A stretch of DNA of 64,000 nucleotides from Octopus sinensis. Lineage: Eukaryota. Under the pieces are notes generated by a model. The model saw only the letters and a list, made by a program, of their open reading frames with translations. It made no database searches and had not been told where the DNA came from. The position numbers and the translations under genes are program-made. This document shows, one piece after another, positions 3,241-64,000 of this stretch. The number at the start of each line of letters is the position of its first letter. The first letter of the stretch is position 1. Location: assembly GCF_006345805.1 (NCBI RefSeq), contig NC_042997.1:82770001-82834000 (forward strand), given 5' to 3'.

Positions 3241-3263
3241 ATATATATATACATAGATATATG

Positions 3264-20454: not shown

Positions 20455-21008
20455 ATGAGCATAAATGGAATTTGTATCTTTGTGGTACCAGTGCCGGTGG
20501 CACACAAGAAAATCATCCGAACGTGGCCGTAGCCAGTACCGCATAGACTGGCCTCGTGCTTGGGGACGTAACAAACCCATCCGATCGTGGCCGTCCGCCA
20601 GCCTCATCTGGCACCTGTGTCGGTGGCACATAAAAACACCATCCGAGCGTGGCCGTCTGCCAGCCTCGTCTGGCACCTGCCAGCCTCATCTGGCACCGTG
20701 TCGGTGGCACATAAAAACACCATCCGAGCGTGCCGTCTGCCAGCCTCGTCTGGCACCTGTGTCGGTGGCACATAAAAACACCATCCGAGCGTGGCCGTTC
20801 GCCAGCCTCGTCTGGCACCTGTCGGTGGCACATAAAATCACCCACTACACTCTCGGAGTGGTTGGCGTTAGGAAGGGCATCCAGCTGTAGAAACACTGCC
20901 AGATCTGACTGGCCTGGTGCAGCCTTCGGGCTCCCCAGACCCAGTTGAACCGTCCAACCCATGCTAGCATGGAAAACGGACGCTAAATGATGATGATGAT
21001 GATGATGA
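20455..21008 (+). mobile_element. Young RTE 3'UTR / SINE copy with a ~60-bp VNTR
   Basis: CpG-rich repeated ggtggcacataaaaacaccatccgagcgtggccg units; (GAT)n tail. Confidence 0.85.
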
Positions 21009-21044
21009 TATATGAGACAATGCTTCATGAAAACAATATATATC

Positions 21045-21460
21045 ATCATCATTTCATGTCCACTTTCCATGCTTGCATGGGTTAGATGGTTTGACTGGAA
21101 CTGGTAAACCAGAGAACTGCACCAATTCAAGTCTGATTTTGGCTTGGTTTCTACAGCCGGATGCCCTTCCCAATGCCAACCACTCTGAGAGTGTAGTGAG
21201 TGCCTTTTACGTGTCACTGGCATGGGTGATTTTATTTGTCACAAACACAGATGCTGTTACATGACACCAGCTTTTGATTTCACTTGGCTTGACTAGTCTT
21301 CTCAAGCAAAGCAAATCTCCAAAGGTCACAATCACTTGTCATTGCCTCTGTGAGACACCACATTTGAAAATCATGCTTCACTACCTCATCCCATGTCTTC
21401 CTGGGTCTACCTCTTCCCCAAGTTCCTTCCACAGTTAGAGATCAGCACTTCTTTATGCAA
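21045..21460 (-). mobile_element. RTE 3' end, tail-to-tail with 20455..21008
   Basis: Same UTR on the minus strand plus the antisense ORF2 end. Confidence 0.7.
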
Positions 21461-25740: not shown

Positions 25741-26898
25741 GTAAGAGTTAATGTTTTTATATCTTCTCCCCTGATTTAATATCCAGCTCCCTTTTAATGT
25801 CTGTGTTCTATGTAAATGTGAGTTGGCTGGTTCTGCAAATTTGGATTATTGCACATTGTTGTTAATATTGTTTGATCAGATATATAGATTATATGTACTG
25901 TTGCAGAGTTATTGTAACTGTTGTTGGCTCTTATTAGATTCAACTTTGGCCTGAAGGTAGCCAGTAAAATGACACGGATTAAAATATATCCAATCTGTCA
26001 AATGTGTTGTACTTTAGATATATCATCCAGTCGTGCAGTGGCTTGTGCTGAAATATAATGTAACAGTCAGGTCATGTTATACCCATTTTACAGTCCAGTC
26101 TGTTTATATAAGATCAGAAAACTATAGCCATAGCTTCAGGATATATGTGCAAAGAGATCTCATTAGATGTTCAATGCTTTTTGATTGCTTATAATTTAAC
26201 AACTTTAAAACATAAGGTTTATCTTTGTAGATATTTTGTAATTATTATTTAGGAAATTTAATAACCCTGTCTGTAGAGTATTGGGACTAAATAATTTGCA
26301 GTATTTAATTTTGTTGTTACAATCTGACCTCAAATACTTCTACAGTTAACTTTGTATTTCAGTCAATTCAATCCACTATACTCTTTCCTTCTTACAAATT
26401 TATGGCTGCTGCCTTTGCCATCGTCATTGACATCTTGTGTCTGCTTTTCTATGCTGTCATAAGTTTGGTGGGTTTCACAGTAACATACAACTTGTCTCGG
26501 TCCTTTGTCATCTTGCATACACAACAATAGAAAAAATGTTTTCTTTCATGTTAGTCATGTTTTTTTTGGCATGATTTTTATTTACAGCTGAATATCCTTT
26601 CTATTGCTAACCACTCACTCTACACTATGGGCTGTGCATTATATTATGTCACTGACACTTGACAGATTGTTTGCAGTAAGACTAATGAGTCCCCTATACT
26701 ACTCTCCTAGATGGTTGCCTTCCTTGGCTGTGGTTTGTAGAGGAAGCGTATCTTTTACTCTTCTCTTTTTGGCATGGCTTTTCTAGCTGAATGCCCTCTC
26801 CATCATCAAGCACTTTACATCATGGACTAAATTGCATTGCATGTTAAAGCTGCCTTTTATACTTGAACACCCAAACATCTTATCTCTAAACAATCATT

Positions 26899-27303
26899 CA
26901 TCATCATCATCATCATCGTTTGACATCTGCTTTCCATATTGGCATGGGTTGGACAGTTTGACTGAGGACTGGCAAGCCAGGAGGCTGCACCGGGCTTCAA
27001 TCTGATCTGGCAAGGTTTCTACAGCTGGATGCCTTTCCTAATGCCAATTACTCCAAGAGTGTAGTGGGTACTTTTTACATGCCACTGGTATTGGGGCCAG
27101 TCAAGCAGCACTGGCATTGACCAAATGGTGCTTTTTATGTGCCACCAGCACGGAAGCTAGTCAGGCAGCATTGGCATCAGCCATGACTACAATTTTATTT
27201 GACTCAACAGGTCTTCTGAAGCACAGCATATTGCCCGATGATTGAAGGGTACTTTTAAACGGGCCAGTTATGCAACATTGGTATTGGCCATAGCTATGAT
27301 CTC
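26899..27303 (-). mobile_element. RTE 3'UTR / SINE copy
   Basis: Same tail and VNTR units as 2585..3240. Confidence 0.8.
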
Positions 27304-27720: not shown

Positions 27721-27929
27721 GTATCTGGAGAAAATGGGAAAAATTTGAATGAGCAGGAAGATCACTTTCAGAAAGAACTAGAAGAACATCAGAAGCTTTT
27801 AGTTGCTTATGATGCTGAGAACAAACGTCTGTATAATGATGCCAAACAGCAAAAAGTTTTGCAGAAAAAAGCTGAAGAGAGAATGTTCTCTGAAAACCAG
27901 AAATTGTTGCGAGAACTTAACAGTCTGCG
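27721..27929 (+). CDS. CEP162: CEP162 exon (VSGENGKN...HQKLLVAYDAENKRLYN...EERMFSENQKLLRELNSLR), phase 0-2
   Basis: CAG acceptor, GTTAGT donor at 27930; clear match to recalled human LLQGYQQENERLYNQ...EERMFKENQSL. Confidence 0.9.
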
Positions 27930-29244
27930 GTTAGTATTTCATTTCTAGTGTATGCAATTGTCTGAACTGATTAGATGGTTGTCTATGGTCTAAAAGGTCA
28001 ACAGTTCATATCCTAATACCAGTATCACAGTATATGTATAACTCACCAGCTGAGTTTATTTGACTATAAATAAGTATTATTGGGAGGAGCAGCTGCTCAC
28101 TGTGAAGGGTAATAGTAGTGTATAATTATAATGATTATTTCATTAGTTTGAATTGATGAATTTCAAGTCCCTCTGTATGGTTCTAGGAATATTATCCAAT
28201 GCCTCTGTTACATTTAAGGCTATCTTCAAGCACACCAAAAAATTCTTACTGTGTTTTATATATTAATACTTGAAAGTGTCTTACTGTTTCCAAATATAAT
28301 ACTAAACAGTATTTGTTTGTTTTACATTTATTTTGTTTTTATAATAATGTGAAAGGCAAAGGATAGATTCACAGAAAATATTGGAATTGGAGAATTTTTA
28401 TGAGCTACAAACGACAAGCCATTTCTGTTTAACAAACATCAGGACAGCACAGTTTACAATGACAGTGTCATTATTGACTGACCTCTATTCTTAGTCACCA
28501 CCAGGTGGTGGCTACTTGTAACTATTGACTTTACTGTTAAGATTAACAGATGCATAGCAGCCAACCCATGCAGCCAATAATTAGAACCAGAGACTGGAAT
28601 CAGTGACAAAGCTAACCAAGACGAAGGATACTGTTTCAAGGTTGAATAATGGGTGATACACTTTATTGGTTCTCTGTTTTAACACCCCCACCTGACTCTT
28701 GGGTACTTTTAGCTGAATCCACTTTGTTGTAAGCATTCAGCTCAGGACTATAGTCTGAAGGCAACTCTTTATCTTGATATACTACTTCTTACAACCCATA
28801 AATTATGGTTTCTTCCACTGTTTTCTTGGAAGGCCTGTGGCACTGCCATTCCTTAACTTCCACCCCATAGTAGACCATTTTCCATTGTCTTTTCTTTTAT
28901 CATAATTCTGATATTATGGTGTAGCTTAGGCAAAGCACTATTCATCTTTTTCTCATTTACCTGGTTGTAGAGCAAATCATTAATTCATACAAAGAGAAAA
29001 CAGATGTAAGATCAATTTCCTCCTCTGTGTATTGCATGTCATTATGTCTAGATAGCCTCATTGTGTCTGTTTACACCACTTTAGTAAAATTAAATATATA
29101 GGATTAAATAAGACACATACACTCCAACAAAAAATAGAGTGCTTGCAATGGACTTAAAATCAAGTCCAATGTATTGATTGTTCAATGCTTTATTCACTTG
29201 GTTATTTCATCCTACATGAGAAATGTGCCAGCTCTTCACTTGTC

Positions 29245-31680: not shown

Positions 31681-31981
31681 TTGAATAGGGTTCATGTGTG
31701 CTGTGCTTGCTCTAATAATTACATCATAAAAACAAAACAGATTTAAAAAAATTTACCATCTTAAATAATAGGTACGAGCATTGCAGCATCATTTAAGAGT
31801 TTGTTTCACAACAATATGGTCTCACTGAGTGACATCTGGTCAAGTGTCTTCTACTTATCACTACTGCACTGCAAACATAAATTCCGTAATTCTATATCTA
31901 GTCTTCATTTGTTTCATTAATGTCTTTATTTCATTCAAACAGTTATTTCTTGGTTTTCAATTACCATTAATTTTCCTACAG

Positions 31982-32131
31982 CTAGAAATCAGTCACTGGA
32001 AGCAGCAGTGCAATCTACTTGAACAGACAAATTTTGAATTGGAGACTCAAATAAGTAAACTGGTTCAGCAGAAAGAAGAAATGCATCAAGTATTAGAGGA
32101 AATAAAGAAGGCAAAAGATGATGAAATGAAG
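31982..32131 (+). CDS. CEP162: CEP162 exon (LEISHWKQQCNLLEQ...KDDEMK), phase 0-0
   Basis: TTTTCCTACAG acceptor, GTAAAG donor at 32132; coiled coil. Confidence 0.85.
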
Positions 32132-32489
32132 GTAAAGCAATTAGAAAAATAACTGTCATTATTAATATAATAATAGGCATTCTGTCTGTGAGTACAAGAT
32201 ATTGGTTTACTGACTGGATGATCAATGGTGCAAACCTGACTGCAGTTTTGTGAATGCATTGTTTGAATTGACTGAATAGATAAGCAGTGGAAAAATAATT
32301 AGCAGTTGATTCTACCACTTTCTTTTTGAACTCAAATCTCATTGATATTGACTTAACTTTACCGTTTATTCTTTTGTGGTTCAGAAAATAAATCTCAGTT
32401 GAGTAATGATGTCCATATTATCAAATGTGACCCTCCACTAAACTTGTGAATTTGTGCCTATGCAAGAAATCAATCTTAAGCTTGTGAAA

Positions 32490-34062: not shown

Positions 34063-34700
34063 ATGCAGAGGGACATCTTCCAGTATTCATGTGAAAGAAG
34101 CTGAAATTTTTATAGCTCTGTGAAATCATCTCACACAAAACAACTACTCTAAAGGTTAAGAGTAGTTGATGCTACCTTTGAAGTACCAATGCTTCAATAA
34201 ATATATCTAATCCCCTCTATTTGTGGTTGGAGACAAGAGGGGGCATCTGGCTATTGAACTGCACTCAAATCGGTTTGTTGAAATGTGCATAAAATTGCTG
34301 CTGCTGCCATCACTACTGTCACTGCTGCTGCCACCGCTACCATCCTAGCCATCACCATTGCCTCCACCACTGCTGCTGCTGCCACAACCTCATCTTCTTC
34401 TTCCCCTCTTCCTCCTGCTCTTTCTCCTCCTCACTTCCCCCACCCTTCTTTTCCCCCACAACCACAAAAGGCCTTGAGGTATTTAGGTGTATCCCTTTCT
34501 GTTTGGAGTTCAAATTTGTTGAGGCTAACTTCACTTAAAATAAACGCCTGTAGAGAACTAGGGATCAATTAAAATTCAAATATATCCTGTTTGAGAAATG
34601 CATGACCTTGTAGCTTACATTAGAAATAAGAGTTAAAAAAAGCATAACTAATTATCGTTTAATATCCATGTTTCATTATTTTGGTATTCTTTAATTGCAG

Positions 34701-34862
34701 GCAGTTGAATCCAAATTTTTTGATGACATTGAAAGTATGAAGAAGAAACTTCACTGGTATACATACAATCAACAACTGTTAGACCAGTCTGTTTTAGTCT
34801 TGCAGCAAAAAGATAAAGAGATTGAACAGCTAAATCTTAGAATTCAGAAACTGAGCTCAGAG
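34701..34862 (+). CDS. CEP162: CEP162 exon (AVESKFFDDIESMKKKLHWYTYNQQLLDQ...KLSSE), phase 0-0
   Basis: TTGCAG acceptor, GTATGT donor at 34863; matches recalled KRLQWYAENQELLDKD. Confidence 0.9.
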
Positions 34863-34924
34863 GTATGTATATTTTTTTAATATATTCAGCTGTTTCTTTT
34901 TTAAATTACAATAAAAATAAATGT

Positions 34925-35415: not shown

Positions 35416-35499
35416 ACTGGGAAACGTTTTGAGGAGAACAAGTTACTTGGAAAAGAAAGAGCTGTTAATCAGAAACGTATTCAAAATCTCGAACATCAG
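35416..35499 (+). CDS. CEP162: CEP162 exon (TGKRFEENKLLGKERAVNQKRIQNLEHQ), phase 0-0
   Basis: TTCTCATTGTAG acceptor, GTGAAT donor at 35500; like recalled RAADAKKIQDLERQ. Confidence 0.85.
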
Positions 35500-36034
35500 G
35501 TGAATAAACTTCTGGGAAATTCTGCTCTGCTGGTTCTGATTGGGAAATTCTGCATTTGTTTCTAAATGCAAAACCATAAATTCTGAGTAATTTCAAAGGA
35601 TTTTTTAATGATTTTCCATTTTGATTCACAAAGCTTTCTATCTGTCTCATTCTATTCTCTTTTTCTGACTATTTATAGATGTGTTTATCTGTGTCTAACT
35701 CTGTTCTGTCTGTATATAGATGTATTTATCTGTGCTCATATCTTTACTCATGGCAGTGCCATATAAAAGCGTCTGTGCAGTGTCAGGTAAAAGCACCTGT
35801 GTGGTGTCAGGTAAAAGTGCCTGTCTGGTGCCATGTACAAACACTCATGTGAAGTCACGTAAAAGCACCCAGCACACTCTGAAAAGTGGTTAGTATTAAG
35901 AAGGGCATCCAGTTGTAGAAACAATTCCAAATCTGACTGGAGCCTGGTGCAGCTCCCCAGCTTACCAGCTTTGATAAAACCATCCAACCCATGCTAGCAT
36001 GGACATCAGACGTTAAATGATGATGGTGATGATG

Positions 36035-39036: not shown

Positions 39037-39292
39037 GTTGGTTTGTATCAGTAACTTAGCAGTTTGGCAAAATAGACTGATAGAAAAAGTTCCAGATTTA
39101 AAAATAAATTAAGGTACTGGGATTGATTTGTTTGACTAAATTCCTCAATGCAGTAGCCCCGCATGGGCTCAATGCAGTGACTAAAACAAGTAAACAGTAA
39201 GAGACAAAAAAATAAGAGTTTATTTGTAAAATTCTATTAAACCTATAAAATATTATTTTGTCTGTCATTCCAAAAATTGTTTTTAATATCAG

Positions 39293-39523
39293 ATAAAGGA
39301 AATGGAAAAAATCTACTGTAAGCGCAACCCGAATTCTTTACCTGCATTATTAATGGCAGCTGGCAGTTCTGTTGAAGCAAGCAGTGACTGTCACCAGGCA
39401 CCATCCCCACTAAACCTTCTGCTTGAGCAGAAGGTTCAGAAACTGGAGAATCAACTGAAGAATGCTCAAGAAGAGGGTGATCTCAGAGTGAGGACTGTGG
39501 AACAAAAGTACAACAAGCTGAAG
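39293..39523 (+). CDS. CEP162: CEP162 exon (IKEMEKIYCKRNPNSLPALLMAA...VEQKYNKLK), phase 0-0
   Basis: TTTTAATATCAG acceptor, GTTAGT donor at 39524; carries the conserved KRxPNSLPAL motif. Confidence 0.9.
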
Positions 39524-40220
39524 GTTAGTTCCTATAGTTACTGTACGAAATAGGAGTTATAAGCCAGATTGTGTCTTTGTGAAGCACTTATGGATGTTCA
39601 CATTATTCCAGTGTATGTATATAGATGTTTGTATATAGATGTCAGTATTTTGTTACGGTTATTTCTACAGATATTCTACAGAAATTATAGCCAGCACTGA
39701 TTTTTGCTACAATGTTTCATATATGAGAAGTCAGATGTAAACAAACAATGAGATTGAAGATGAAAAATGGGTAATGGACGTATGTGTCATATTTCAGTGG
39801 TGTTTTACCCCTGCATCAGCACCCATCTAACCCACTAGTCATCCTTGAACACATTGCTTAAATAGCTACCACAAATAGTGGTGTAAAGTTTTTGGAGATA
39901 CCAATTTACATATTAAATGCTTTCCTGGAAGCTGATACGTAAATACTAATGATTTGTAGGTACATGGTATTTCGTTATGCAACCATAATATTCTATAAAG
40001 TATATCAAATATTTTTATAAGTCAGTACCATGTTCTACTGTATTAGCAGTGTTATTTACATTATTTTGTTAAGGTTATTCCTACAGATTCTCAATAGAAA
40101 TTATAGCCAGCACTGATTTTTGCTATATCATTTCATATGCAAGGTGCTAGATGTAAACAAACAATGAGATTGAAGATGAAAAATGGGTAATTGACATACC
40201 TACAAATCATTAGTATTTAC

Positions 40221-42440
40221 TTGTGATGTCATAAGAGAGAAATGTATCCGCATGGATGATGGTGCACTTGCTTTTAGTGAGTCTGCAAAGAAAGAAGCTT
40301 GGAAACGCCATTATGAAAGACTGCTGAATGTAGAGAATGAATGGGAGGAGGAGAGTCTGCCAAATGTTGACCCAGTTGAGGGACCAGCTACCTGAACTGA
40401 CAGTACCCTGGTAGATAAAGCAATTCAGGATATGAAGGCAGGGAAAGCCTCTGGCCCATCAGGAATCACCGCTGAGATGCTTAAAATATCTGGTGGTGTG
40501 GGTTATGGTCTAGTCACCCATATTGTAAATCAGGTGGTTCATGAAGGAGTCATACACAATGACTGGTATAGCAGCATCATAGTCAACTGCTACAAAGGTA
40601 AAGGGGATGTCTTAGACAGAAATAATTACAGAGGTATCAAATTGTTGGATCAGGTGATGTAAGTTGTGGAGAGAGTTAGTCTAGATGAGATGCAGTTTGG
40701 TTTTGTGCCAGGTAGAAGCACTACTGATGCTATATTTTTAGTAAGGCAACTGCATGAGAAATACAGAGCCAAAGATAAACCTCTGTACTTGGCTTTTGTT
40801 GACTTGGAGAAAGCTTTTGACAGAGTCCCCCAATCCCTGATCTGGTGGTCAGTGCGGAAACTAGGGATAGACGAGTGGCTGGTGAGAACTATACAAGCCT
40901 TGTACAGGGATGCTACCAGTAAGGTGAGGGTGGGCAACAAGTACAGCAAAAAATTTAGGATACAAGCAGGGGTTCGCCAAGGATCGGTGCTCAGCTCCTT
41001 ATTCATCATTGTCCTCCGGGCAGTAACAGAGGAATTCAAGACAGGCTACCCCTGGTGGCTCCTCTATGCTGATGACCTTGCTCTTATAGCTGAATCACTA
41101 CCTGAACTAGAGAAGAAGCTCCAGGTATGGAAGCAAGGTCTAGAATCAAAGGGCTTTAGAGTTAGCCTAGTAAAAACCAAAGTCATAGTAAGTAGGAAGG
41201 CAAGCAAATCACAAATCTCTTCAGGTAGATAGCCCTGCTCAATCTGTAGAAAAGGTGTTGGTAGAAACTCCATAAGATGCACCCAGTGTAAGCTTTGGAC
41301 ACATAGAAGGTGCAGCAACATCAGAGGAAGGTTAACAGGGAAACTAACTTTTGTATGTGGAAGATGCATAGGAACAATAAACACTGAATATGCGCAGAAA
41401 ATAGATTTCATCAACTGCCTGGGGGGGCAAGCTAGTGGTAGTAGATAGCTTCCGTTATCTAGGTGACCAAGTTAGTAGTGGAGGTGAATCCTATGAGAGC
41501 ATAGCTGTGAGAATAAGATTAGGCCGAGCAAAGTTCAGAGAGCTCCTACCCCTGCTGGCAACAAAGGACCTCTCTTTCTCTCAGAGTGAAAGGCAGATTG
41601 TTTGATGCCTGTGTGCAAACAGCTATGCTGCATAGCAGTGAAACATGGGCTGTGACAGCTGAGGACATGCGTAGGCTTGAAAGAAATGAAGCCAGTATGC
41701 TCTGCTGGATATGCAATGTCAGTGGGGAGAGCGTAAGCATCTTGAGAGAAAAGTTAGGCTTAAGAGGAATCAGATGTGGTGTGCAAGAGAGATGACTGCA
41801 TTGGTTTGGTCATGTGATGCGTATGGACAAAGACAGCTCTGTAAAGAAGTGCCGATCTCTAATTGTGGAAAGAACCCGTGGTAGAGGTAGACTCAGGAAG
41901 ACATGGGACAAGTTGGTGAAGCATGATCTTCGAATTTTGAGCCTCACAGAGGCAATGACTGGTGACCAAGACCTTTGGTGATGTGCTGTGCTTGAGAGGA
42001 CCTGTCCAGCCAAGTGCACCTGTACTAATGGCATGTAAAGAGCATTTTTTGAATGTTGGACCTCACTAAGGCAAAGTGGCTGAGTTCCTTACGAGTGTTG
42101 AGCCTCACAGAGGCAAAGTGGCTGAGTTCCTTTTGAGCATTGAGCCTCACAAAGGCAATGACCAAGACCATTGCCATTATGTCATGCTTGAGAGGAGGAC
42201 CCACCAAGCCAAGCAGAATCACAGTTGTGGTGGATACCGGTGTCACACAAATTGGCACCCATGCCAGTATCATGAAACCACCCCCAAGCCCTCTTCCCCC
42301 GGGTGTCACACAAATGGAACCCATATCAGTGGTATGTGAAAGCATCCATTACACTCTCAGAGTGCTTGGTGTTAGTAGTTTGGTGCAGCCTTCCAGCATG
42401 CCAGCCCAGTCAAACTGTCCAACCCATTAAATGATGATGA
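40221..42440 (+). mobile_element. 5'-truncated, decayed RTE-clade LINE (RT, internal PHD finger, 3'UTR, (GAT)n tail)
   Basis: EMQFGFVPGRSTTDAIF, FVDLEKAFDRV, GVRQGSVLS, LLYADDL; stops and frameshifts; the tail ends ...aacccattaaatgatgatgat. Confidence 0.92.
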
Positions 42441-42544
42441 TGATTATGATGTACCAGCTTCCAGGAATGCATTTAACATGTAAATTTGTATCTCCAGTAA
42501 CGTTACACTGCTATGTGTGGTGGCTTTTCAAGCAATGTGTTCAA

Positions 42545-42658
42545 GGATAATTAAAGGGTTAGATGGGTGTTGAGGAAGAAGAGGATGATTAATAGGTTAG
42601 ATAGGTGTTGAGGAAGGGGAGGATAATTAATGGGTTAGATAGGTGTTGAGGAAGGGGC
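42545..42658. repeat. 38-bp minisatellite, 3 copies
   Basis: ggataattaa.gggttagat.ggtgttgaggaag at 42545, 42583 and 42621. Confidence 0.85.
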
Positions 42659-43215
42659 AAAAACCCCTTAAATATGGCATATACACCCATTACTCGTGTT
42701 TCATTTTGGATCTCATTGTTTGTTTGCATCTGATATCTTGTATACAAAACATTATAGCAAATATTAGTGCTGGCTAGAATTTCTATAGAATGTCTATAGA
42801 AATAACCTTAATAAAATAATGTAAATTGCACTGCCAATGCAGTAGAACATGGTATTGACTTAGAAAAACATTTAACATAGTATATTATGGTTGCATAACG
42901 AAATACCAGGTACTTACAAATCATTATGATAGATGTCAGTGTCTTTCATTTCTTTGGAATGTATATATATTTTGTGTTTGTTAATTTTCTGAAAACTCAT
43001 CATCATTACCATCAATGAAAAATAAATATGTTATTCACTGCTGAGTACGTCACAAGAGAACAACTTTTCCCTGATATGACAACACACTCAGATCCTTGGC
43101 ACAAGGGATTCTAACAAAGCCATCTCGTTAACATTTTAATTTATTCCATCACTTCAACTTATTCTTCCCTTTATCCTTTTAATAAGATTTTATTATTTAA
43201 TTTGTTTGTCTAAAG

Positions 43216-43447
43216 CTGCAGTATGAAAGTCAGATTGAAACATTGGAAGAAACTGTTAAGAAGTTACAGCATCAAGCTATTTTGGGTCGTTGTACAGTTT
43301 GCAAGAAACCATCATCTGAAGAGATGCCAGAAGAACCAAAAACAAGTGAAAATACAGCGGAAGATAATTCAGAAACTACAATTAAAGAATTACAGCAAAA
43401 TGTTGACCAACTGCAGTCTGAAGTGCAAAAATATAAAGAAGAAGATG
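43216..43447 (+). CDS. CEP162: CEP162 exon (LQYESQIETLEE...QKYKEED), phase 0-1
   Basis: AAG acceptor (an in-frame CAG 6 nt downstream is also possible), GTAAGT donor at 43448. Confidence 0.85.
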
Positions 43448-43707
43448 GTAAGTCATTTTATATTGGTCTTGTGTATTTAAACAACTAACTAGATTTATAG
43501 AAGCATTTATCTCATGATAATATGGAACAGGGCATGTTGTAAAATTCTGTAAAAACAGGCATGGCTGTGTAGTAAGAAGTTTGTTTCTCAATCACATGAT
43601 CCTGGGTTCTATTCCACTTTGCAGCACTTTGGGTAAGTGTCTTCTACTATGAACCTGGGGCTGAGTGGATTTGGAGATGGAAACTGAAAGAACCCCATCA
43701 TATATAT

Positions 43708-43753
<46 letters not shown>

Positions 43754-44217: not shown

Positions 44218-44415
44218 ATAACTTGCATGCTCTGCTGCAGAAAAGCCAAAACAAAGAGACTCAGTTGCAAAACAAGATGCATGTTTTACAGCAGCAGTTA
44301 GATACCAGTAATAATCAAGTTGCAACACTGCGCTGTATGTTTAGTAAACTTCAAAACGAAAAACAAACTTTGTTGAGACAACAGCTTATTAAAAAGCCAA
44401 CATCAACAAATGAAG
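44218..44415 (+). CDS. CEP162: CEP162 exon (DNLHALLQKSQNKETQLQ...KPTSTNE), phase 1-1
   Basis: Long pyrimidine tract plus CAG; the donor GTCTGT at 44416 is weak but is the one compatible with the next exon. Confidence 0.8.
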
Positions 44416-44660
44416 GTCTGTATGTGTATGTGTGTATATGTGTCTGGTTGTGTGTGTGTGTTTGCATTTTCATTTCATGTTGTACTTTGTTGAATATTTG
44501 AATGTTATTTTTGGTATAGGTATGGTTGTGTAGCAAGAATTTTGCTTCCCATGATTCGTGGTTCAATTCCACTGTATGGCACCTTGAGCAAGTGTCTTAT
44601 GCTATAACCCCAGGCTGACCAAAGTCTTGTTACTGGATTTGTGGATGAAAACTGAAAGAC

Positions 44661-44699
<39 letters not shown>

Positions 44700-44703
<4 letters not shown>

Positions 44704-45060
44704 TGTAGCATAACAGGCGCGCTGTTAGTTGGGGCATTTGAATTATAACGTCGGATGTAATCAATTGAACCACACGTGTATTTATCGTTATGGTAAAATC
44801 TGGCGTGTGATTGAGTGGATTTCATCCAGATAGTTTTGGCTGACGAGCTACAAGTGGATTTTTTTGTAAGTAAAATTACATTTAATTCATTAATAGCGAA
44901 ACAATTGTCCCAAAATAATCTGTATTTTTGTTATTTTTTATTTGCCCTGTCCGTGTGAGCTAACAATCGTACTGACTTTCATGGGAAACATGTATTTTTG
45001 TGGTTGAAACCTTTTGGATTAACTAGTGCTAGAGTGAGCCATATAGTGACCACTCTCTTA
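44700..45060 (+). mobile_element. About 360-bp non-coding element between (TA)n tracts carrying the intact hammerhead (retrozyme / Penelope pseudo-LTR-like)
   Basis: Complex, CpG-retaining sequence bounded by TA repeats on both sides, with no ORF. Confidence 0.6.
44828..44921 (+). ncRNA. Type I hammerhead ribozyme, intact core
   Basis: Helix I AGATAGTTTTGG/CCAAAATAATCT; CTGACGA 44840-44846; helix II GCTA(44847-50)/TAGC(44894-97) with an extendable hairpin; GAAAC-AATT-GTC 44898-44909, predicted cleavage after C44909. Confidence 0.85.
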
Positions 45061-45090
45061 TATTTATTTTATATATATATATATATATTT

Positions 45091-45187
<97 letters not shown>

Positions 45188-46019
45188 AATCCACACACAC
45201 ACACACACACACACACTCACATGTCTATGTATGTGCATGTGTACATGTTTGTATGTATATGTGTGTGTTGCTGTTTCCTTACATTAACATCATGTGATAG
45301 TTGCAAATAAATGTTTCTACCATGTAAATGGTGTCCTTCATTCCCTATTTTCCATGGAAAGCATATTTAGTTGTGGGGGAAATATTTCCTTATTTAGAAA
45401 CAGATAAAAGCTCATGGCAGGAAGGGTATCCAGCTATAGAAAATCCACCTCAACAAATCCCCTCTGAACCATACAAGCATGGAAAAGTGGACAGTAAAAT
45501 GATGATGATGATGTTGTGTATCAAATAGCATAGAATTAATTATGTATGTTGTAATTGCACAAACAGTTAAGTGGGTGATATCTTGGTCCTTGAAATCTAA
45601 AAGCTACAAGATAATGCATAATTAATTCAAAACAATGTGAATAAATTTGACCAAGTAATCCGAATGCAAAAGGGTTAAGGAGTTTCTGAAAGAATTATAG
45701 CAAACTTCTTAAACAATAATTTGTATTTAGTTCCTGTTGTTCTATTTGTCTCATATGACATTTCATCGTATATAACATCCAATTTTGTGCTATATCATTT
45801 ACAAGGAGCCATTGCTGTACATTATAATACACCATGCAAAATAAAATTAAAAAAACAAACACATTTGTTGATAGTATGAGTATCTTATACAGAATTCCAA
45901 GAAGAAAAATAAACAAAGATTAACCACAAAGTTTTATTAAAAGCAAAATGCAAAGTAAAAATTAACACACACTAAATTATGAAAGTTATCATAAATTAAC
46001 TGTTAAATAATTTTAAATA

Positions 46020-46440
46020 TAGTGAGTTGATTGAACTCTGTGAAAACAGTGGATGGAAGGCAGTATGCCTTCTTGTAGAGATAAGTTTTAGAGGATTTGT
46101 TGGAACCAGGCTTCATTCAGTTCTCTGGAGTCTTAGACTAACTGTGAAGGAGACAAAAGATGTTGCCAGAAAATTGCTGGAAGCCACTGAAAAAGTGAAC
46201 TATTATACTTGGCTCAAGAGAGGAGAAGTATGGTGCAGCAAGGACAAGCGTATAGGATGGTAGAAAGATCTGGTCCAGAATTGCAACATTTGACTCAATA
46301 AAACTCATGCTGTTGTATGGGAGTTATGTAGCCTATACCAGTGGGTGAATGTGGACAGCTCTGGTGTTAAGGGGTTGAAATACCTACAGAGCAGCTTCTG
46401 ATGAGGCATCAACTCCTGCATTCGAAGATACAGTACATCA
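46020..46440 (+). mobile_element. 3' end of a HERO-like (R2-group, restriction-like endonuclease) non-LTR element
   Basis: LIELCENSGWKAVCLLVEISFRGFVG...LLEATEKVNYYTWLKRGEVW resembles the recalled HERO C-terminus ECxxxGWxAxCxPVEVGCRGF...EAAEKASxWxWxKR. Confidence 0.7.
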
Positions 46441-47039
46441 ACACCCTCTGTACAACAAATGTTTACCCTAAATCTCATCATCCTTTGCTAACTAATTGCA
46501 AAATGTGCCTACTGTACATCACCATAACTGTCATTTCATGCAGGTGATGAAGTTGAGAAGGTCTTGATAGATTAAGGGATTTAGGAACACCATTCTCCAA
46601 GCTAAACATAAAAGATTGATAAACAAATATGAAAAATCTTTAATAGGAAAGATTAAACTTGAACACAATCAGATCTTCAAAATAACAACCACAAACTCCC
46701 TCACACATTCACACACACATACTCTCTCTCTCTCTTTTAAGAGAGAGAGAAAGAAAGAAAGAGAGAGAGAGAGTGGGGGCAAAGCTGTGTGGTTAAGAAG
46801 TTTGCCTCATGGTTTTGGGTTAAATCTCACTGCATGGAACCTTTGGCTTGGTGGTTAAGAGCCTTGAGTTGACTAAAACCTTGTGAGTGAAATGTGGTAC
46901 ATAGAAACTGAAGAAAGTTATCATCTTGTGTTCAAACAAATATTGTTATATTTAGGCATGGTCATATTTTTGCCAATTGACCACATGCACCATACACTTG
47001 GTTTTCACAAAGGTATTATGACCCAGCTTAAATATAACA

Positions 47040-47091
<52 letters not shown>

Positions 47092-47690
47092 ATATATATA
47101 TGGATATATGTTGTGTGTGAGTCTCTGTGTTAGTGTATACTAATGTAAATCACTGCATTGAATTGTAGTCATTTACATCAAACACTAATTTAGCTGTTTG
47201 ATCCTTAGATATTGGTAAAATAGTACCATAAGTCTTCTTTTTCAAGTGGCAGAATTTGAATAGTGTTGTGAAACACTACTCTAGAAATATTCCTCCTCCC
47301 CCCAGCAACTATTAGCCTTGGCAGGTCTTCAGTTTTATTTTGAGTGTGGTTGATTGATTTTCTTTCTCTATTAGGGTGTGGAAGTCTCCAAAATATAATG
47401 TCTGATATGGCCTGATGTTCAGCATGATAGTGGTGGCCAGTAAGGCCTACTGAAGTTCAACAATTGTAGAGATGGGTGGAATATGAAAATTCTGGTTTTT
47501 AAAAATGCTGTTTCTTTGTATGATTCACACATGATTAGATAATCTAAAAAATATAAAATATGAAACTTGCCCCTCCTCTATATTTCATTGATTGTTGTAA
47601 AGTATTTTGTTAACTGCACTTTAGTGAACCTTGCAGTGTTTGGGTCAGTATTAGTCAGAGTTTTCCTCTATATCCTATATTCATTTACAG

Positions 47691-47845
47691 AATTGAATAA
47701 GAAAGCCTCAAAACTACCTCAAAAGTCTAAGAAATCAGATGTAATTGATGTTGGAAGCATTTTGGCTGGCAAAGAAGAAAAAATTATCAGTGTGATTGAA
47801 GTTCCTGAAGATATATTGAAAGAAAATGAATTGTTAAAAATTAAG
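47691..47845 (+). CDS. CEP162: CEP162 exon (ELNKKASKLPQK...LKENELLKIK), phase 1-0
   Basis: TTTACAG acceptor, GTAAAG donor at 47846. Confidence 0.8.
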
Positions 47846-49666: not shown

Positions 49667-50749
49667 CCCTTTCGTTACTATATTTCTGACCAAATTACAC
49701 CCCTTATGTGTTTCAATTAATTTCTAATGTAATCATAAATTTAGTCTGGTTTCATTAAACAACTATAACTTTTTTATTTATCGATATATTAATCTGATTT
49801 TTGGAAGATAATTTAATGAAATATTCTCAACCAATTCTATACTATAATTTTTGTCACAAAGTGACTCTAATTGCAGGTAGATACAGGTAAATTCAACAAA
49901 ATATAAAATTATTAAAATTTTGTTCAAACATTGCTATAGAAAATGGGTTATTAGCTAATATTCAATTGTGTATACAACAAAATTTTACGATAGAATTTGT
50001 TATTCTGGGTAACTTTCTGATACCCATAATAATATTTATGGCAAAATAGTCTTAATTTCATTTAAGGTTGTGGGAAACCACAAACTATCGTTTCTTTCGC
50101 TTTGTGTACGTTTAGCGTAACGGTTCGTTCCCGCCGTAATGATTTCAAATAGGCTCATTCGAAAAAGTAAATAGAAATAGTCTAAGGCTTTACCCTTCTG
50201 GGAAAATCTGTGGCTTGGTTCAGTTTCTTCAGAAAAATCACCGAAAGAAACAGTTTTAAAATTTTCACTCCATTCGGGTGCCAATTCATTTTCTTTATCG
50301 CTGTCGATCTCGGATTCACAGTTTTCACTTTCGGAAAATGAAACATCAGATTCATTATCAAATACCACATGCTTTTTTTTTTCAGTCATAGAGTTAGATT
50401 TATGAAGGTCTTCAGTAGAAAATCCTTCGAATTCTGACTTGCTGCTTGATATAATGAAATTCGTATCCATTTTTTGTCAGAATTACAAATTTTGAAAACA
50501 CAATAGGAACAAATTTCGGAAAAAAATCTCCCATAATTCACGGAATTAAAATTACACTTCGATTATTGTACAAAACTGTAGTTGAACTCTTTACGAAGTA
50601 TAAAACGTGTTTTCACGAATGTACTAAAGTGATTTGCTCTGATATTCTCATTTAAATATGAATAGGTAAATTCGGGCGGCTTTGGGCGGTTTGGTTTTAT
50701 TAACCAAAATTTTTTTCGGGCGGCTTTGGGCGGTTTGGTAACGAAAGGG
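49667..50749 (-). mobile_element. Internally deleted piggyBac element
   Basis: TTAA at 49663-66 and 50750-53; 12-bp TIR ccctttcgttac/gtaacgaaaggg; ORF 50036..50470 has an acidic N-terminus then ALDYFYLLF..LFEIITAGTNRYA...WFPTTLNEIK. Confidence 0.88.
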
Positions 50750-52486: not shown

Positions 52487-53167
52487 TATATATATTTAGA
52501 TGTGTGTGTGTGTATATATATATATATGTGTTTGTGTGCATATATATATATATGTTAGTAATGGTAAGACAACGAAAGAATGAATGAGACCTCGGTATTA
52601 TGTAAATAGAGGAATTTATCAGTAATTATATTACAGATATATACACACACACACACCCACATATATATTAATGGAGCATAAGTGCAAAGCAGTGTTTAGG
52701 TATGAGTAGAATTTAGGTTAGTTGAAATCTGTTTGTCACATATTTAAACTGCTAAAGGCAAATACACTGCAGGTATTGTGGAGAAAAAAATCTCTCTTAA
52801 AGTAAAATGGTGTGAAAACGGTAAAAAATCAAACTGTTCAAACCACAAAAAGTCCAATAGCAGTTGTTTCCAACAAAAATTTCTGAATTTTCTGCCCCAC
52901 AGGGCAAAAATGGAAGTTCACAGATTAACAGAAGTTCAAATTTCAACAGGTACAACAAACAGTGCAATAACAAAGAAACATTAGATAATAACAGATAGAA
53001 CTCACAAACAAGCAACAGCCAAAGGGAGATGTAGCTAAGAGGTGATTCTTTATTATGAATATTTACATTCGAACATTGAAAGGACAATACAGGACATTAC
53101 AAAACATTTAAAGATGGCTTGGTGAGCTTATTTGATGACTTTAAAAATATTTTATATATATATATAT

Positions 53168-53660
53168 ATCATCATCATCATCATCATCATTTAACGTCTG
53201 CTTTCCATGCTAGCATGGGTTGGACAATTTGACTGAGGACTGGCAAATCAGATGGCTGCACCAGGCTCCAATCTGATCTAGCAGAGTTTCTACAGCTGGA
53301 TGCCCTTCCTAATGTCAACCACTCCGAAAGTGTAGTGGGTGCTTTTATGTGCCACTGACATGAGGGCCAGTCTGACAGTACTGGCAACAGCTACGCTCAA
53401 ATGGTGTTTTTTATGCCACCTGCACGGGAGTCAGTCCAGCGACACTGACAACGACCTCGCTCGAATGTTTTGTTCACATGCCACCGGCATAGGTGCCAGT
53501 AAGGCGATGCTGTTAATGATCATGCTCAAATGGTGCTTTTTACGTGCCACCAGCACGGAAGCCAGACAGCTGCTCTGGCAGTGATCCTGCTCAGATGGAG
53601 CTGTTAGCGCTCCACTGGCATGGGTGCCAGTCATCGAATTTGGTTCAATTTCAATTTCGA
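53168..53660 (-). mobile_element. RTE 3'UTR / SINE copy with VNTR
   Basis: Same tail; its 5' part matches 22105-22200. Confidence 0.8.
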
Positions 53661-54982: not shown

Positions 54983-56023
54983 CATGGGGAAGTCAAAAAT
55001 TATCTGTACTTTCACCATAACATATCTTTATTATTGCCACACTGCCTTCTGCGCATGTTTGCTTATAGTTGGTACTATTGTGGTCATGTGATCGAAGTTT
55101 GAGCCTGGTCATGCCATTTTTCTTTCTGGCTTTACAGTGTAAGCATGGCCACTTCACCAGCAGTGTGCACCAAAGAAAAACAAAGGGGCATGGTTCTGTC
55201 TGTCAAATCATTCACGATCAGCTCAACTTCCATAAAGTCTGTGCAAGATGGGTGCCAAGAGAGCTTACTGTAGAGCATAAGTGCAAATGTCTTGAGGTCT
55301 GTCAACATTTACTTGATCGCTACAACTATGAGGGTGAGGAATTTTTATGCAGAATTGTCACGAGAGATGAAATGTGGGCCCAGCATTAGGAGGCCGAATC
55401 CAAAAGGCAGAGTATGAAGTGGAAACCTCCTGGCTTGCCAGCAATGAAGAAATTCAAGACTCAGTCTTCTGCAGAAAAGGTGATGTTAACCCTGTTTCAG
55501 GACTCAAAAGGGCTTATACTGGAAGTTTAACTGGAAAAGGGGTGTATGATCAACTGTGCAAGATACAGTGCTTTGCTGGCCAACAAACTGAAGCCAGCAA
55601 TTAGCACTGAATGCTGAAGCCTATTGTCGAAGAAAGTTTTGTTGCTGCATGACAATGCACACCCACACATGGCCACTCAGACCATTGAAACCATTAACCA
55701 ATTGGGTTTTGATGTGTTGGAACACTCTGCCTACAGCCCAGATCTCACCCTTTCTGACTGTCTCATATTTGGACTGTTGAAAGATGGTTTATGAGGTTGT
55801 CGATTTCCTACAGATGAAGATGTGAAAGAGGTGGTGCATAAATGGTTGCACAACAAACTGGAAACTTTCTTCTTGGAGGGAATACGCAAGCTTGTGGACC
55901 CCTAGACCAAGTGCATCGAAAAGGAAGGAGACTATATAGAAAAATGACATACTTGTTTATACCCTGCTTTTGTGTATAAACACTGAAAAAGTAAGAGTGC
56001 GTATAATTTTTGACTCTCCCTTG
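54983..56023 (+). mobile_element. Decayed mariner (DD34D) transposon
   Basis: TA on both sides; TIRs catggggaagtcaaaaattat / ataatttttgactctcccttg; KVCARWVPRELT, IVTRDEMW, LLHDNAHPH, HSAYSPDLTLSD. Confidence 0.9.
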
Positions 56024-57549: not shown

Positions 57550-57653
57550 TATATATTAAGAGGGAGAGAAAGAGAGAGAGAGAGAGTGTGTGTGTGTGTG
57601 TGTATGTGTGTGTTGATTTGTTGATCACACCTTTTTGTTTGTCTTTTGTCCAG

Positions 57654-57770
57654 ATCAACACTTTGAGAATTTCTCACCAGAAAGAACTTCACAAAATTCT
57701 AACAGAACAAGCTTTGAAGAATTCCACCAGTTCTTCTGTGCAACTTCAGTGTAAAGTTGATGCCCAGCAG
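57654..57770 (+). CDS. CEP162: CEP162 exon (INTLRISHQKELHKILTEQALKNSTSSSVQLQCKVDAQQ), phase 0-0
   Basis: TTTTGTCCAG acceptor, GTAATT donor at 57771; like recalled HQREIEKLLCQNAVENSSSKVAELNRKIATQE. Confidence 0.9.
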
Positions 57771-58276
57771 GTAATTGTATACAACTTAGAAAGAAAAATT
57801 TTTCATTTGTTGGTTGTTATTCAGATAATTTGTTGCGATTCGAAATGACTGGCTCAAGGAAATCTATTGAACGAATGACATTAATTTACAAGAAAGCTGG
57901 AACACAAGGGTGTTGTGTTGTTATTTAGCCTTAGGTCCACCCTGTATGAGAAGTCATTTGATCAAAGGCATTCCAGCTATGACCATCTTATCCTTCTCTT
58001 GGCCATTGCATGTCTAGGGCTGCATTATCCAATGTGTGCTTTCCTTTTCAATATGATTAGATTTTACTACCTTTTCTAGTAAATTGACTATGTAGAAGCT
58101 TCTTTGCCAGAGGTATTGAAGAGATAGCAATGCTGATATGACTGAACATATGATGTGATTGGACAATATCATCATCATTATCTTCATCTTTTAACATCTG
58201 TCTTCTGTGCTAGCATGGGTTGGACAGTTTGACAGGAACTGGCAAGCTGGAGAGCTTATATATATATATATATATT

Positions 58277-58633: not shown

Positions 58634-58887
58634 ATATATATAAATATTAAAGGAAATAGAGAAATACAATTGACATATGAAAAATTTATTTACATTATAA
58701 TATAATTATACTATGAAAAGATATAATATAATATAATATATGATATAATATAATATAACAAATAGTTAAAACTATATATAAACTGTTGCTTTTAATGTCA
58801 TGTGACATCTGTGTACTAACATTTAGCTTTTATTTGTTTATGTTTCATTTTTGTTTTTTTAAGCAATTTACATATCTAAATTTACAG

Positions 58888-59037
58888 GTGTTAATAGACC
58901 ATCTCCAAGAACAACTTAGAAATGCTCAGGTGGATGCTGAAAAGTTGTCTGAACTTAAAGTACGTGAAGTCGTATTAGAGGCTCACATACAGCAGTTGCA
59001 GGATGAATTAGCTGAAGCAAAAAGCACACATTCTCCA
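58888..59037 (+). CDS. CEP162: CEP162 exon (VLIDHLQEQLRN...LAEAKSTHSP), phase 0-0
   Basis: TTTACAG acceptor, GTAAGT donor at 59038; like recalled VLIRHFQ...ELREAKENHTP. Confidence 0.9.
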
Positions 59038-61593: not shown

Positions 61594-61881
61594 GAAAGGC
61601 AGCATTTCCAGAGTCTTGTTGAGAAAATACAAGAACTAGAAAAGAAACAGGATGCTCGTGAGAAAGAAATGCTGAGTGTGATGAAGAAAGGCAGCTGTTT
61701 ACCATTTTCTGAGTTGGAGAAGGAAGTGGAGAAATGGAAGAAAGTAGCTGAAAGCAAAAATGCAGATATTGAAAAGTATCGCGTTGAATTAGATTCAATG
61801 CTCAGTATGTTGACCTCCCTAAAAGCAAGTGCTGCATTCACATCCCAAAATAAATATATGACAGCAACAATGTATAGATAA
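61594..61881 (+). CDS. CEP162: CEP162 terminal coding exon (ERQHFQSLVEKIQELEKKQDAREKEM...KWKKVAESKNADIEKYRVELDSML...MYR*)
   Basis: Pyrimidine tract plus TAG at 61591-61593; stop TAA 61879-61881; matches recalled C-terminal EVEKWKRLAQLKNRELEKFRTELDSIL. Confidence 0.9.
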   Translation, partial: ERQHFQSLVEKIQELEKKQDAREKEMLSVMKKGSCLPFSELEKEVEKWKKVAESKNADIEKYRVELDSMLSMLTSLKASAAFTSQNKYMTATMYR

Positions 61882-62149
61882 CACTGTGTAATACAATTTT
61901 TGTCCTTGGATAGCAACTGGTATTTCCTATTTTCTTACCCCTATAAAGTGTGAAAACTGGTTAATATTTCCTTCAAACTGTGCTATTGTTACATTTATTC
62001 AAACCTCAAAGAATCTCTCTCAACTAATGGCTATGATGCTCCCCCACAGTCACTAACTGATATGCTCAAGTGGTTATGGTCAAACAACTAACAAGCAGTA
62101 ACTCTATTAAGGGTCGTAGGAATTGTGAGAGAAAATATGATATTTCGAA

Positions 62150-64000
62150 CATGCAACCACATATCAGAGACATGACAGAAACAACAGCACTCGAGTACAT
62201 TGAAACTGAAAAAGTCCTTAATGCTCACATGGGGATGTGAGTATCATTCTCCAGTCTGTGAAACGCACAGCGAACAGTTTCATAACTACCAACAATGAAA
62301 TCCCACCCCTATATGGCCTTCGAAAAGATCATAAGAGCCACATGGATCGTATACTTGGGCCACCTACCCGACCTTTTTGTGGTGCCAACAATGCAAACAA
62401 CCACAAAATATATTTTCTCTCACAATTCCTACGACCCTTAATAGAGTTATCTGCGGATGTGATAGTACTGAAGACCTCCTTAGCAGGATCCGCGAATGCA
62501 ACAACACATGTAACCTCAGTGACTACATCGTAGGTAGCATGGATGTAGTATCACTATATCCTTCCATTGATGTAGACTTTACTGTCGAAAAATGTATAGA
62601 GATAATTAGTGAGAGTAATATGATATTTAAAACTGTGGACGTATATGAACTAGGGCTCTTCCTGGCCCTGACTTATACCGATGAATATCTGTCACACAAT
62701 AATCTTTTATATGTTTGTCCCACCCGTAACAAACGAGGTAGACCACCTACCATTACCTCAGTATACAAAAAGACCCACTGTGAACGCTGGACGAAGCCAG
62801 ACTACCCACCTTCAGATGCACACGACATCAGAACTACTATCGCACATGCTATCGGTATCAGCCTTAGAACTACGCTTAAAACCCATATTTTTAAGTTTAA
62901 CAACAAACTGTATAAACAGACAAAAGGCGGTGCTATTGGAGTAGGGATTGCCGGTGATGTTGCTAACCTCTTCATGGTATGGTGGGACAGACATTTTAAA
63001 CAGTGCCTAGCTACCTGTAACATCCACTTAGCTATGTACTCTCGATACGTTGACGACATTAACCTTGTGAAACGTAATAGTAATACAGACACAGATATAG
63101 ACTCTCTACTACATGAAGAACAGGTGATGACAGCTATACAACACATAGCTGACTCTATCCATAGCAGTATAAAAGTTACTGTAGACTACTCCTCTAAACA
63201 CCCCAGTAATAGATTACCTGTCCTAGATACTGAGCTGTGGATAGAAAATACTATGGTTAACGGTACTGTTAAACCCTGTTTACTCTATTCACATTATTGT
63301 AAACCTATGGCTAATCCACTGGTAATTCGTAGTGACTCAGCGATGTCGAGTACTACCAAGCTCAGCATCCTAGTGGCAGACTTAGAGTAATGAAGAATGT
63401 ATCCCCACTATGCCAACCACAAGGACGACAACAACACATCCAGCACTACATATACCGAATGCAACGTTCTGGATACACACAATACGATAGAATCAGAGTG
63501 TACAAAGGAGCGAAAACAAGATTCGAACGCATTCTAAGAAATGACGAAAACGGTATATGTCCCCCCTATACTGCAACAAGTTCTGGAATAGGTTAGAGAG
63601 GGACACCAATAAAAGAAATAAAACCAATACTTGGTATGATAACAAGAAATTTCACAATGTAATGTTTGTTGACGCCACACCGAAGAACAAATTAAGTAAG
63701 GCATTTAAGAAAATCCTGCGCACAACTGGCCTTAAGATCAAATTTGTAGAAAATACAGGTAGGACTATCAAATCTGTATCATATCTATTTGATAGAATCA
63801 CTTGTCAAAATAATTGTGCAGTATGTTCTACATATCCACATGTGAACTGCAAAACCAAGAGCACTGTATACCAAATTAAGTGCCAAGAAGGAGCTTGCGC
63901 GACCAACCCAGGGTCATACATAGGTGAGTCTTCTATGAGTATCAATGATTGGTTCAAAGAACACCTGGACAACTACATTAAAAAGAAACCAAACTTCATC
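62150..64000 (+). mobile_element. Penelope-like retroelement (RT + GIY-YIG), frameshifted, runs off the window
   Basis: ORF 62377..63390 has GSMDVVSLYPSI, QTKGGAIGVGIAGDVANLFM and YSRYVDDI. Downstream frames give CQNNCAVC and CKTKSTVYQIKC...YIGESSMSINDWFKEH (GIY-YIG; the catalytic Arg reads as Trp). Confidence 0.9.

Follow-up and report, generated by a model that had tools for sequence, protein, structure and literature searches.

A hammerhead motif in an octopus intron

The stretch analysed here, a 64,000-nt piece of the Octopus sinensis genome (contig NC_042997.1; hereafter the window, to which all coordinates refer), carries a complete type I hammerhead ribozyme motif within an intron of a plus-strand coiled-coil gene. 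We mapped the gene by tblastn with P0001, a transcript-derived homologue of 38% identity, which placed plus-strand exons at 27766–27930, 31820–32134, 34695–34865, 35416–35511, 39290–39526, 43210–43449, 57648–57800, 58885–59037 and 61594–61851, with a stop codon at about 61879. Two further exons enclose the motif. The exon on its 5′ side (44218–44415, plus strand) has the acceptor ...ttccag/AT and the donor AAG/gtctgt at 44416, and aligns with P0001 residues ~464–523. The exon on its 3′ side (47691–47845, plus strand) has the acceptor tttacag/AATTG and the donor AAG/gtaaag. The two join in frame and align with P0001 residues 464–604 (E = 7e-20). As they do so on the plus strand, the hammerhead lies on the sense strand of the intron between them (44416–47690; 3,275 nt), with its cleavage site 494 nt into the intron after the donor GTCTGT. 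This agrees with the original prediction, made from the sequence of the window, which had put the motif on the sense strand of an intron about 490 nt past this donor.

The same prediction had called the gene CEP162. A protein search with the concatenated exons returned two Logan transcript homologues, with 38% and 29% identity, whose Pfam accessions are PF27821, PF27882 and PF27944. The name CEP162 is not confirmed, since these homologues are unnamed and have no relative in the PDB. A protein search with a single exon gave no match, and none of ten open reading frames (ORFs) of the window was present in the protein collection by exact look-up.

Read over 44700–45060, the DNA contains every invariant hammerhead nucleotide, in a motif that spans 44828–44921 on the plus strand; the elements described below are all on that strand. 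Helix I is formed by AGAUAGUUUUGG (44828–44839) and its partner CCAAAAUAAUCU (44910–44921), and 11 of its 12 positions are paired. From the core outward it comprises seven contiguous pairs, six of them Watson–Crick and one G.U (44833/44916), then an A.A mismatch (44832/44917) and four further base pairs. The catalytic core C3-U4-G5-A6-C7-G8-A9 (CUGACGA; 44840–44846) aligns with high posterior probability to the core of RF00163, the Rfam model Hammerhead_1. It is followed by helix II, which with its insertion occupies 44847–44897: a 4-bp closing stem leads through a CA/AA internal loop into an imperfect hairpin of 39 nt. The closing stem pairs GCUA (44847–44850) with UAGC (44894–44897), G44847–C44897 being the G10.1–C11.1 pair. 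The hairpin (44853–44891) is inserted at the position of loop 2 in canonical type I hammerheads. Its outer arm pairs AGUGGAUU (44853–44860) with AAUUCAUU (44884–44891) over 8 bp, including two G.U, and its inner arm pairs UGUAA (44865–44869) with UUACA (44876–44880), giving a helix II extension of 13 bp in total.

The second part of the core, G12-A13-A14 (GAA; 44898–44900), was placed both by reading the sequence and by the RF00163 alignment. Helix III follows as a perfect 8-nt palindrome, ACAAUUGU (44901–44908). As a monomer it would have the pairs A15.1–U16.1 (A44901–U44908) and C15.2–G16.2 with an AAUU loop, and as a dimer it would have 8 bp. C17 (44909) completes a GUC triplet, and the hammerhead consensus puts the predicted cleavage between 44909 and 44910.

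The motif combines the features by which a type I hammerhead is structurally defined: the invariant core, an H17 that is not G, three helices, an open-ended helix I and the G10.1–C11.1 pair. Judged by sequence and structure it is a genuine, structurally complete type I hammerhead and a putative ribozyme. Direct reading of the sequence recovered the invariant nucleotides, helices, coordinates and cleavage site exactly as they had first been given.

A 9-mer, AGTGGATTT, occurs twice in this region, at 44814–44822 and 44853–44861, 39 nt apart. The upstream copy lies within the 3′ arm of a 74-nt hairpin (44753–44826) just 5′ of the hammerhead. The helix II extension has the second copy as its 5′ strand, and the upstream copy could pair with 44884–44891 in its place. 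The repetition is perhaps a coincidence, with a rough expected count of ~0.03.

Chance expectation, Rfam score and predicted fold

We scanned both strands of the 64 kb with a home-made descriptor (the core, a minimum of 3–4 bp in helix II and of 4 bp in helix I, and a helix III that is palindromic or has 2 bp or more), and the sole match was that at 44828–44921. In 60 Mb of first-order Markov sequence simulated with the composition of the window, this loose motif occurred 10 times, or 0.17 per Mb per strand, but a helix I matching that observed (at least six contiguous pairs and at least 11/12) occurred in none of the 60 Mb. A manual extrapolation that takes 0.386 as the pairing probability suggests that the helix I criterion would be reached about once per Gb per strand. 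The fully palindromic helix III would multiply this by ~0.02 and the 13 further helix II pairs would lower it still more, for a total well below one per octopus-sized genome.

An empirical null was provided by the core-only pattern CTGANGA...GAAACAATTGTC, which has 46 matches on 45 contigs in IMG/VR. None of the 46 has helices I and II together; the window copy scores seven contiguous pairs and 11/12 for the first and 4 for the second. A motif-specific pattern had no match in IMG/VR. Hammerhead-family pattern scans of JGI metagenomes returned no match and then four, all of them one unrelated conserved sequence lacking helix I. A pseudo-ORF spanning the hammerhead had no match among 1.84 billion representative proteins, and a full-text search of the literature with strings from the hammerhead and from the neighbouring short interspersed nuclear element (SINE; see below) found nothing relevant. 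Four traits of the motif go beyond what the search required: the G10.1–C11.1 pair, a helix I with 6 Watson–Crick bp ahead of its G.U/A.A distortion, a helix II that reaches its internal loop after 4 bp, and a helix III that is palindromic throughout. All four are listed as traits of canonical metazoan type I hammerheads (PMC4209133).

Rfam reported no hammerhead in the whole 64-kb window at gathering thresholds, nor in 701 nt at E ≤ 10. On 121 nt, however, RF00163 matched 44834–44915 on the plus strand over the full model (positions 1–45) with 30.0 bits (E = 4.2e-6). The difference between the 701-nt and 121-nt results is most likely due to speed filters, which are laxer on short input. Rescaled to a single family, ~2.7 Gb and both strands, the E-value would be ~0.02. 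In the alignment, the 39-nt insertion at 44853–44891 separates the consensus letters CA from AAUA in loop 2, and is the largest departure from the consensus.

The minimum free energy (MFE) fold of the 94-nt motif (−24.7 kcal/mol; z = −4.25) contains helices I and II and mispairs the core, GACGA being paired with UUGUC. The hammerhead fold has −19.1 kcal/mol, against −24.7 kcal/mol for the MFE fold. On these models helices I and II of the octopus motif should form. Their distortions (6 Watson–Crick bp then G.U and A.A in helix I, 4 bp then CA/AA in helix II) lie at the canonical distances (PMC4209133). At the loop-1/loop-2 contact site, the hairpin interrupts loop 2 and helix I has no proper loop 1. 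Helix III as a hairpin alone was calculated at +2.4 kcal/mol. Invertebrate hammerheads typically have a helix III of 2 bp with a tetraloop, and the coral and mussel ribozymes that were assayed self-cleaved within single genomic repeats (PMC7229834). Cleavage of the octopus motif as a monomer is possible and would rely on loop–loop contacts. Because helix III is marginal, the loop contacts are interrupted and the GACGA/UUGUC pairing competes for the core, we expect slow, partial self-cleavage at most, at a level that the host gene would tolerate. Dye et al. (2006, Mol Cell) and Fong et al. (2009, NSMB) reportedly found that co-transcriptional splicing buffers slow cleavage by intronic ribozymes, and that fast cleavage aborts processing.

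The palindrome in helix III had been taken as a sign of dimeric, double-hammerhead cleavage. Such a palindrome is, however, the standard form of helix III in metazoan type I hammerheads. The 8-bp intermolecular pairing is possible, but an intronic RNA present as a single copy is unlikely to cleave as a dimer, because neither strand of the 64-kb window holds a second hammerhead as partner and the 8-bp palindromic duplex has no more than −6.4 kcal/mol. From this energy, the intermolecular helix III would have a dissociation constant in the tens of micromolar.

Origin of the segment and its repeat-rich surroundings

The hammerhead is carried by a 366-nt segment (44700–45065, plus strand), a candidate solitary retrozyme-like unit whose ends we infer from the microsatellites beside it. 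On the left is an (AT)n tract (44663–44699), the tail of an upstream SINE, and on the right a (TA)n tract (45066–45190), so that (TA)n flanks the segment on both sides. The SINE itself (44518–44662, plus strand, followed by the (AT)n tail) is tRNA-derived and belongs to an octopod family; 15 copies resembling it occur in 202 kb of octopus DNA. These 202 kb comprise the 64-kb window and 138 kb from Octopus vulgaris (GCA_951406725.2), fetched via transposable element (TE) proteins. The GC content of the segment is 0.352, and the z-score of its fold is −3.65 as a linear molecule, −4.04 as a circle and −3.48 when the hammerhead is left out. The segment lies beyond all 30 control windows of equal length (mean −0.86, sd 1.4, minimum −3.44). 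Non-LTR (non-long-terminal-repeat) retrozymes are 150–450 bp long, low in GC, highly self-paired and expressed as circular RNAs, with units of 350–390 bp in mussels (PMC7229834). The size of 366 nt, the GC of 0.352 and the strong self-pairing of the octopus segment would match this description if the unit ends are those set by the flanking tracts.

The reading that we favour, and hold to be moderately probable, is that the segment represents a lone copy of a small retroelement, non-autonomous and equipped with a hammerhead (retrozyme-like), which is now passively transcribed in the host intron; both the retroelement origin and the absence of a host function are what we infer from the features of the locus. 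The element, 366 nt long, low in GC and strongly self-paired, would have landed in a SINE's (TA)n tail within the intron of the octopus coiled-coil gene. In its native cycle, the ribozyme would cut multimeric transcripts after C17, and the unit-length RNAs would be circularised and then copied by the reverse transcriptase (RT) of an autonomous element (PMC7229834). At the octopus locus, a single copy would be transcribed passively within the host pre-mRNA. Penelope-like elements (PLEs) are biased toward insertion into microsatellites, (TA)n having been observed for the Naiad clade (Craig et al., PMC8557442), and retrozymes and PLEs co-exist within the same species (PMC7229834); the window itself contains a PLE (see below). 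The giant squid genome has 235 Hammerhead_1 loci (PMC6962438), so the class is already known in cephalopods.

Two other features of the segment were considered and set aside. The hammerhead is not part of the adjacent SINE, as a different sequence follows the related copy (family D8) at about 43600–43713. Strings in the segment that resemble an A box and a B box are separated by ~190 nt, and we regard them as coincidental.

Several observations weigh against a solitary retrozyme-like copy. A search for further copies of the segment or of the hammerhead found none, either in the window or in the 138 kb of O. vulgaris, where canonical hammerheads are absent, and BLAST of the segment against the window gave low-complexity noise only. 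Within these 202 kb the element thus lacks repetitiveness, the key property of mobile elements; at a squid-like density of hundreds per genome, zero copies would be expected in a sample this small, so that 202 kb leave room for a whole family. The tandem arrangement that is the usual state of retrozymes was not seen. The boundaries of the segment are set solely by the flanking microsatellites, and a target-site duplication is unreadable inside (TA)n. The score of 30.0 bits does not reach the RF00163 gathering score of 34 bits, a cut-off that is operational and not a biochemical definition; the sub-threshold score coincides with the 39-nt loop-2 insertion. Lastly, for a neutral relic the integrity of the motif is striking, with one mismatch in ~36 helix positions and an unchanged core, and such integrity would also be expected from selection or from a very young insertion.

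An alternative source of the motif is a PLE, of whose terminal repeat (pLTR) it would be a fragment. pLTRs carry hammerheads, the majority of genomic copies are isolated and truncated, and single dispersed hammerheads are usually ascribed to truncated PLEs (PMC4209133). A PLE is present on the same strand of the window (62061–64000), just past the last exon of the host gene, and the microsatellite preference of PLEs noted above also speaks for this origin. The element has ORFs with a GLxKxHK-type N-terminal motif ('LYGLRKDHK'; 62222–62530), an RT ('YSRYVDD'; 62335–63387) and a frameshifted GIY-YIG-like region ('VYQIKC...GSYIGES'; 63545–64000) that extends beyond the window, all on the plus strand. 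The Pfam models RVT_1 and GIY-YIG did not match it, and its homologues are ~50% identical proteins from marine invertebrate assemblies and O. vulgaris. Against a pLTR origin, the PLE coding homology in the window is confined to about 62.1–64.0 kb and does not flank the hammerhead. No hammerhead was found in the 5′ flank of the window PLE.

The hammerheads of related PLEs are, moreover, of a different build. L050 and L051, two eukaryotic assembly loci from ENA, are relatives of the window PLE. In L051, two identical minimal hammerheads (ACTCA CTGAGGA G GTTGCC GGAG GGCAAC GAA AATT C TGAGT) flank the PLE ORFs at 2739–2780 and 6059–6100, 3,320 nt apart, and in L050 a minimal hammerhead lies 3′ of the PLE ORF at 5827–5866. 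In each, A9 is followed by a bulged base, helix II has 6 bp capped by a GGAG loop, and helix III is reduced to a palindrome of 4 nt. Rfam at E ≤ 1 gave no hammerhead match for these two loci. RF00163 likewise did not match 121 nt of the L051 copy, for which the sole hammerhead match was one of 14 bits to RAGATH-1.

PLE repeats of O. vulgaris carry a hammerhead-like motif, GGACCA CTGATGC G GTCACA GGAG TGTGAC GAAAG AACTYTGGCC, which was perfectly conserved in the seven of seven repeats examined. It lies on the plus strand at 12376–12397 of L046, 12944–12965 of L047, 12942–12963 of L048 and 12408–12429 of L049, with inverted copies upstream in L046–L048. A C replaces A9, there is no clean helix III or H17, and the GGAG loop is common to it and the L051 hammerhead. 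This may be a PLE hammerhead that has degenerated or departs from the canonical form, and it is unrelated to the motif at 44.8 kb. The pLTRs of the O. vulgaris PLE copies are arranged in tandem and inverted, as Craig et al. (2021) described, and (TA)n separates the inverted arms; segment 44700–45065 has no similarity to these pLTRs. Once these actual PLE hammerheads had been recovered, and seen to differ in architecture and sequence, we judged a pLTR origin unlikely.

The original prediction went further and proposed that cleavage of the nascent pre-mRNA could affect splicing of the upstream exon. Put fully, the hammerhead would be a domesticated intronic ribozyme, kept by the host, which cleaves 494 nt past a weak donor and modulates the splicing or yield of the CEP162-like transcript. 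Its position on the sense strand of an intron would fit such a role, as would the fully intact core, the nearly perfect helices and the lack of further copies in 202 kb, and the amniote intronic type I hammerheads of RECK and C10orf118, thought to be retroelement-derived, offer a precedent (PMC6155905, PMC3088659). The intron, however, is a mosaic of SINEs and microsatellites, with further repeats at 46778–47005, and the (TA)n tracts bracket the segment as they would an insertion. Helix III is marginal and has no dimer partner, and a constitutive fast cutter would be costly because fast intronic cleavage aborts processing. A splicing effect is unsupported: a unique low-GC block of 366 nt that lies between (TA)n tracts, beside a SINE, in an intron rich in TEs suggests a retroelement passenger and not a regulatory device of the host. 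We regard the splicing role as speculation and domestication as quite unlikely. In a more elaborate version, which we consider very unlikely, the 39-nt loop-2 hairpin of a host-retained, single-copy hammerhead in an invertebrate centrosomal or ciliary coiled-coil gene would be a switch that gates cleavage and tunes the amount of full-length transcript, and the locus would be an independent, non-amniote domestication. The switch would work either through a platform that binds protein or RNA, or through alternative pairing to the AGUGGAUUU repeat that lies upstream (44814–44822).

That the motif is a chance match to the consensus in AT-rich intronic DNA, without ribozyme ancestry, is very improbable: its single copy, its sub-threshold Rfam score with an empty whole-window scan and the loose-descriptor matches in random sequence would allow this, but the 11/12 helix I absent from the simulated sequence, the extrapolated count per genome, the 46 core-only matches, none of which combines the two helices, and the single-family E-value at genome scale all argue against it.

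The surroundings are rich in repeats. The window has 30–45% GC and many (AT)n and (GT)n tracts, and SINEs and other repeats are common to it and to the O. vulgaris chromosomes at 85–94% identity. A LINE-type (long interspersed nuclear element) RT with ~1.8 kb of open frames lies in another intron of the host gene (40195–41980, plus strand); Pfam RVT_1 matches 40666–41229 with E = 3e-24, and 191-nt inverted repeats of 81% identity (40001–40191 and 42689–42879) bracket the element. DNA transposons are represented by two remnants, one with mariner/Tc1-like ORF fragments ('...VCARWVPRELTVEHK...', 'LLHDNAHPH'; 55069–55800, plus strand) and the other a piggyBac-like N-terminal fragment with a weak DDE_Tnp_1_7 match (E = 0.004; 50036–50470, minus strand). 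A repeat family found at 2300–5000, 20465–21260, 26800–27250 and 53150–53660 has translations with recurring 'AFYVPP...' and 'LQLDALPNANHSESVVGAFY'; it is 86–94% identical to O. vulgaris L047 and appears internally tandem-repetitive. There are also minisatellites at 42050–42158 and 42544–42654, with 42-nt units (3–4 copies) and 38-nt units (3 copies, 89–94% identical).

Comparison with known hammerhead classes

Published work distinguishes two classes of hammerhead. In the canonical metazoan type I form, helices I and II measure 6 and 4 bp, and helix III has 1–2 bp beneath a small palindromic loop; the second class is that of the minimal hammerheads in the terminal repeats of PLEs (PMC4209133, PMC7229834). 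The octopus motif belongs to the canonical retrozyme/satellite class and not to the PLE minimal class: the traits of PLE minimal hammerheads and sequence similarity to PLE repeats are both absent. With the hammerheads of RF00163 (Schistosoma Sm-alpha, newt satellite 2, cave-cricket pDo500) it shares the open helix I, an identical core, the G10.1–C11.1 and A15.1–U16.1 pairs, loop-2 letters that align (CA...AAUA) and an 8-nt palindrome for helix III, for which the model consensus is ACGcgCGU. It differs from them in the 39-nt imperfect hairpin (44853–44891) within loop 2 and in a helix I that runs for 12 positions, with a mere G.U/A.A distortion in the usual place of loop 1. Annotation by covariance models alone may under-count hammerhead ribozymes, since default Rfam missed this motif in the 64-kb scan and gave no hammerhead for the Penelope-type minimal ones.

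The octopus segment resembles the metazoan non-LTR retrozymes, above all the mussel repeats (Cervera & de la Pena 2020, PMC7229834), in its type I topology, a helix III of 2 bp with a tetraloop, an inferred unit of ~366 nt, a GC content of 35%, strong predicted self-pairing and a mollusc host that also has PLEs. Unlike them, the octopus segment, with its inferred unit boundaries, has no tandem repeat and no other copy in 202 kb. Likenesses to the PLE minimal hammerheads (Cervera & de la Pena 2014, PMC4209133) are the type I topology, a helix III region that is palindromic (L051, too, has AAUU), the association with retroelements, the frequency of isolated copies and the (TA)n-rich surroundings. 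The traits peculiar to those hammerheads, namely an extra base after A9, a 6–8 bp helix II with a small loop, a 4–5 bp helix I and no real helix III, are absent from the octopus motif.

The amniote hammerheads HH9 (RECK) and HH10 (C10orf118/CTCL) are likewise of type I and lie on the sense strand of an intron in a protein-coding gene, and they are thought to descend from retroelement ribozymes (PMC6155905, PMC3088659). They are conserved across mammals, birds and reptiles, self-cleave demonstrably and have no hairpin inserted in loop 2, whereas the octopus motif is known from sequence alone. If it were conserved at this intron across octopods, it would become the first hammerhead outside amniotes with a claim to intronic domestication. 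Should the motif cleave, the large set of metazoan type I hammerheads would gain a cephalopod example, one whose loop 2 can accommodate an inserted stem-loop. That 39-nt hairpin is the one unusual detail of an otherwise known class.

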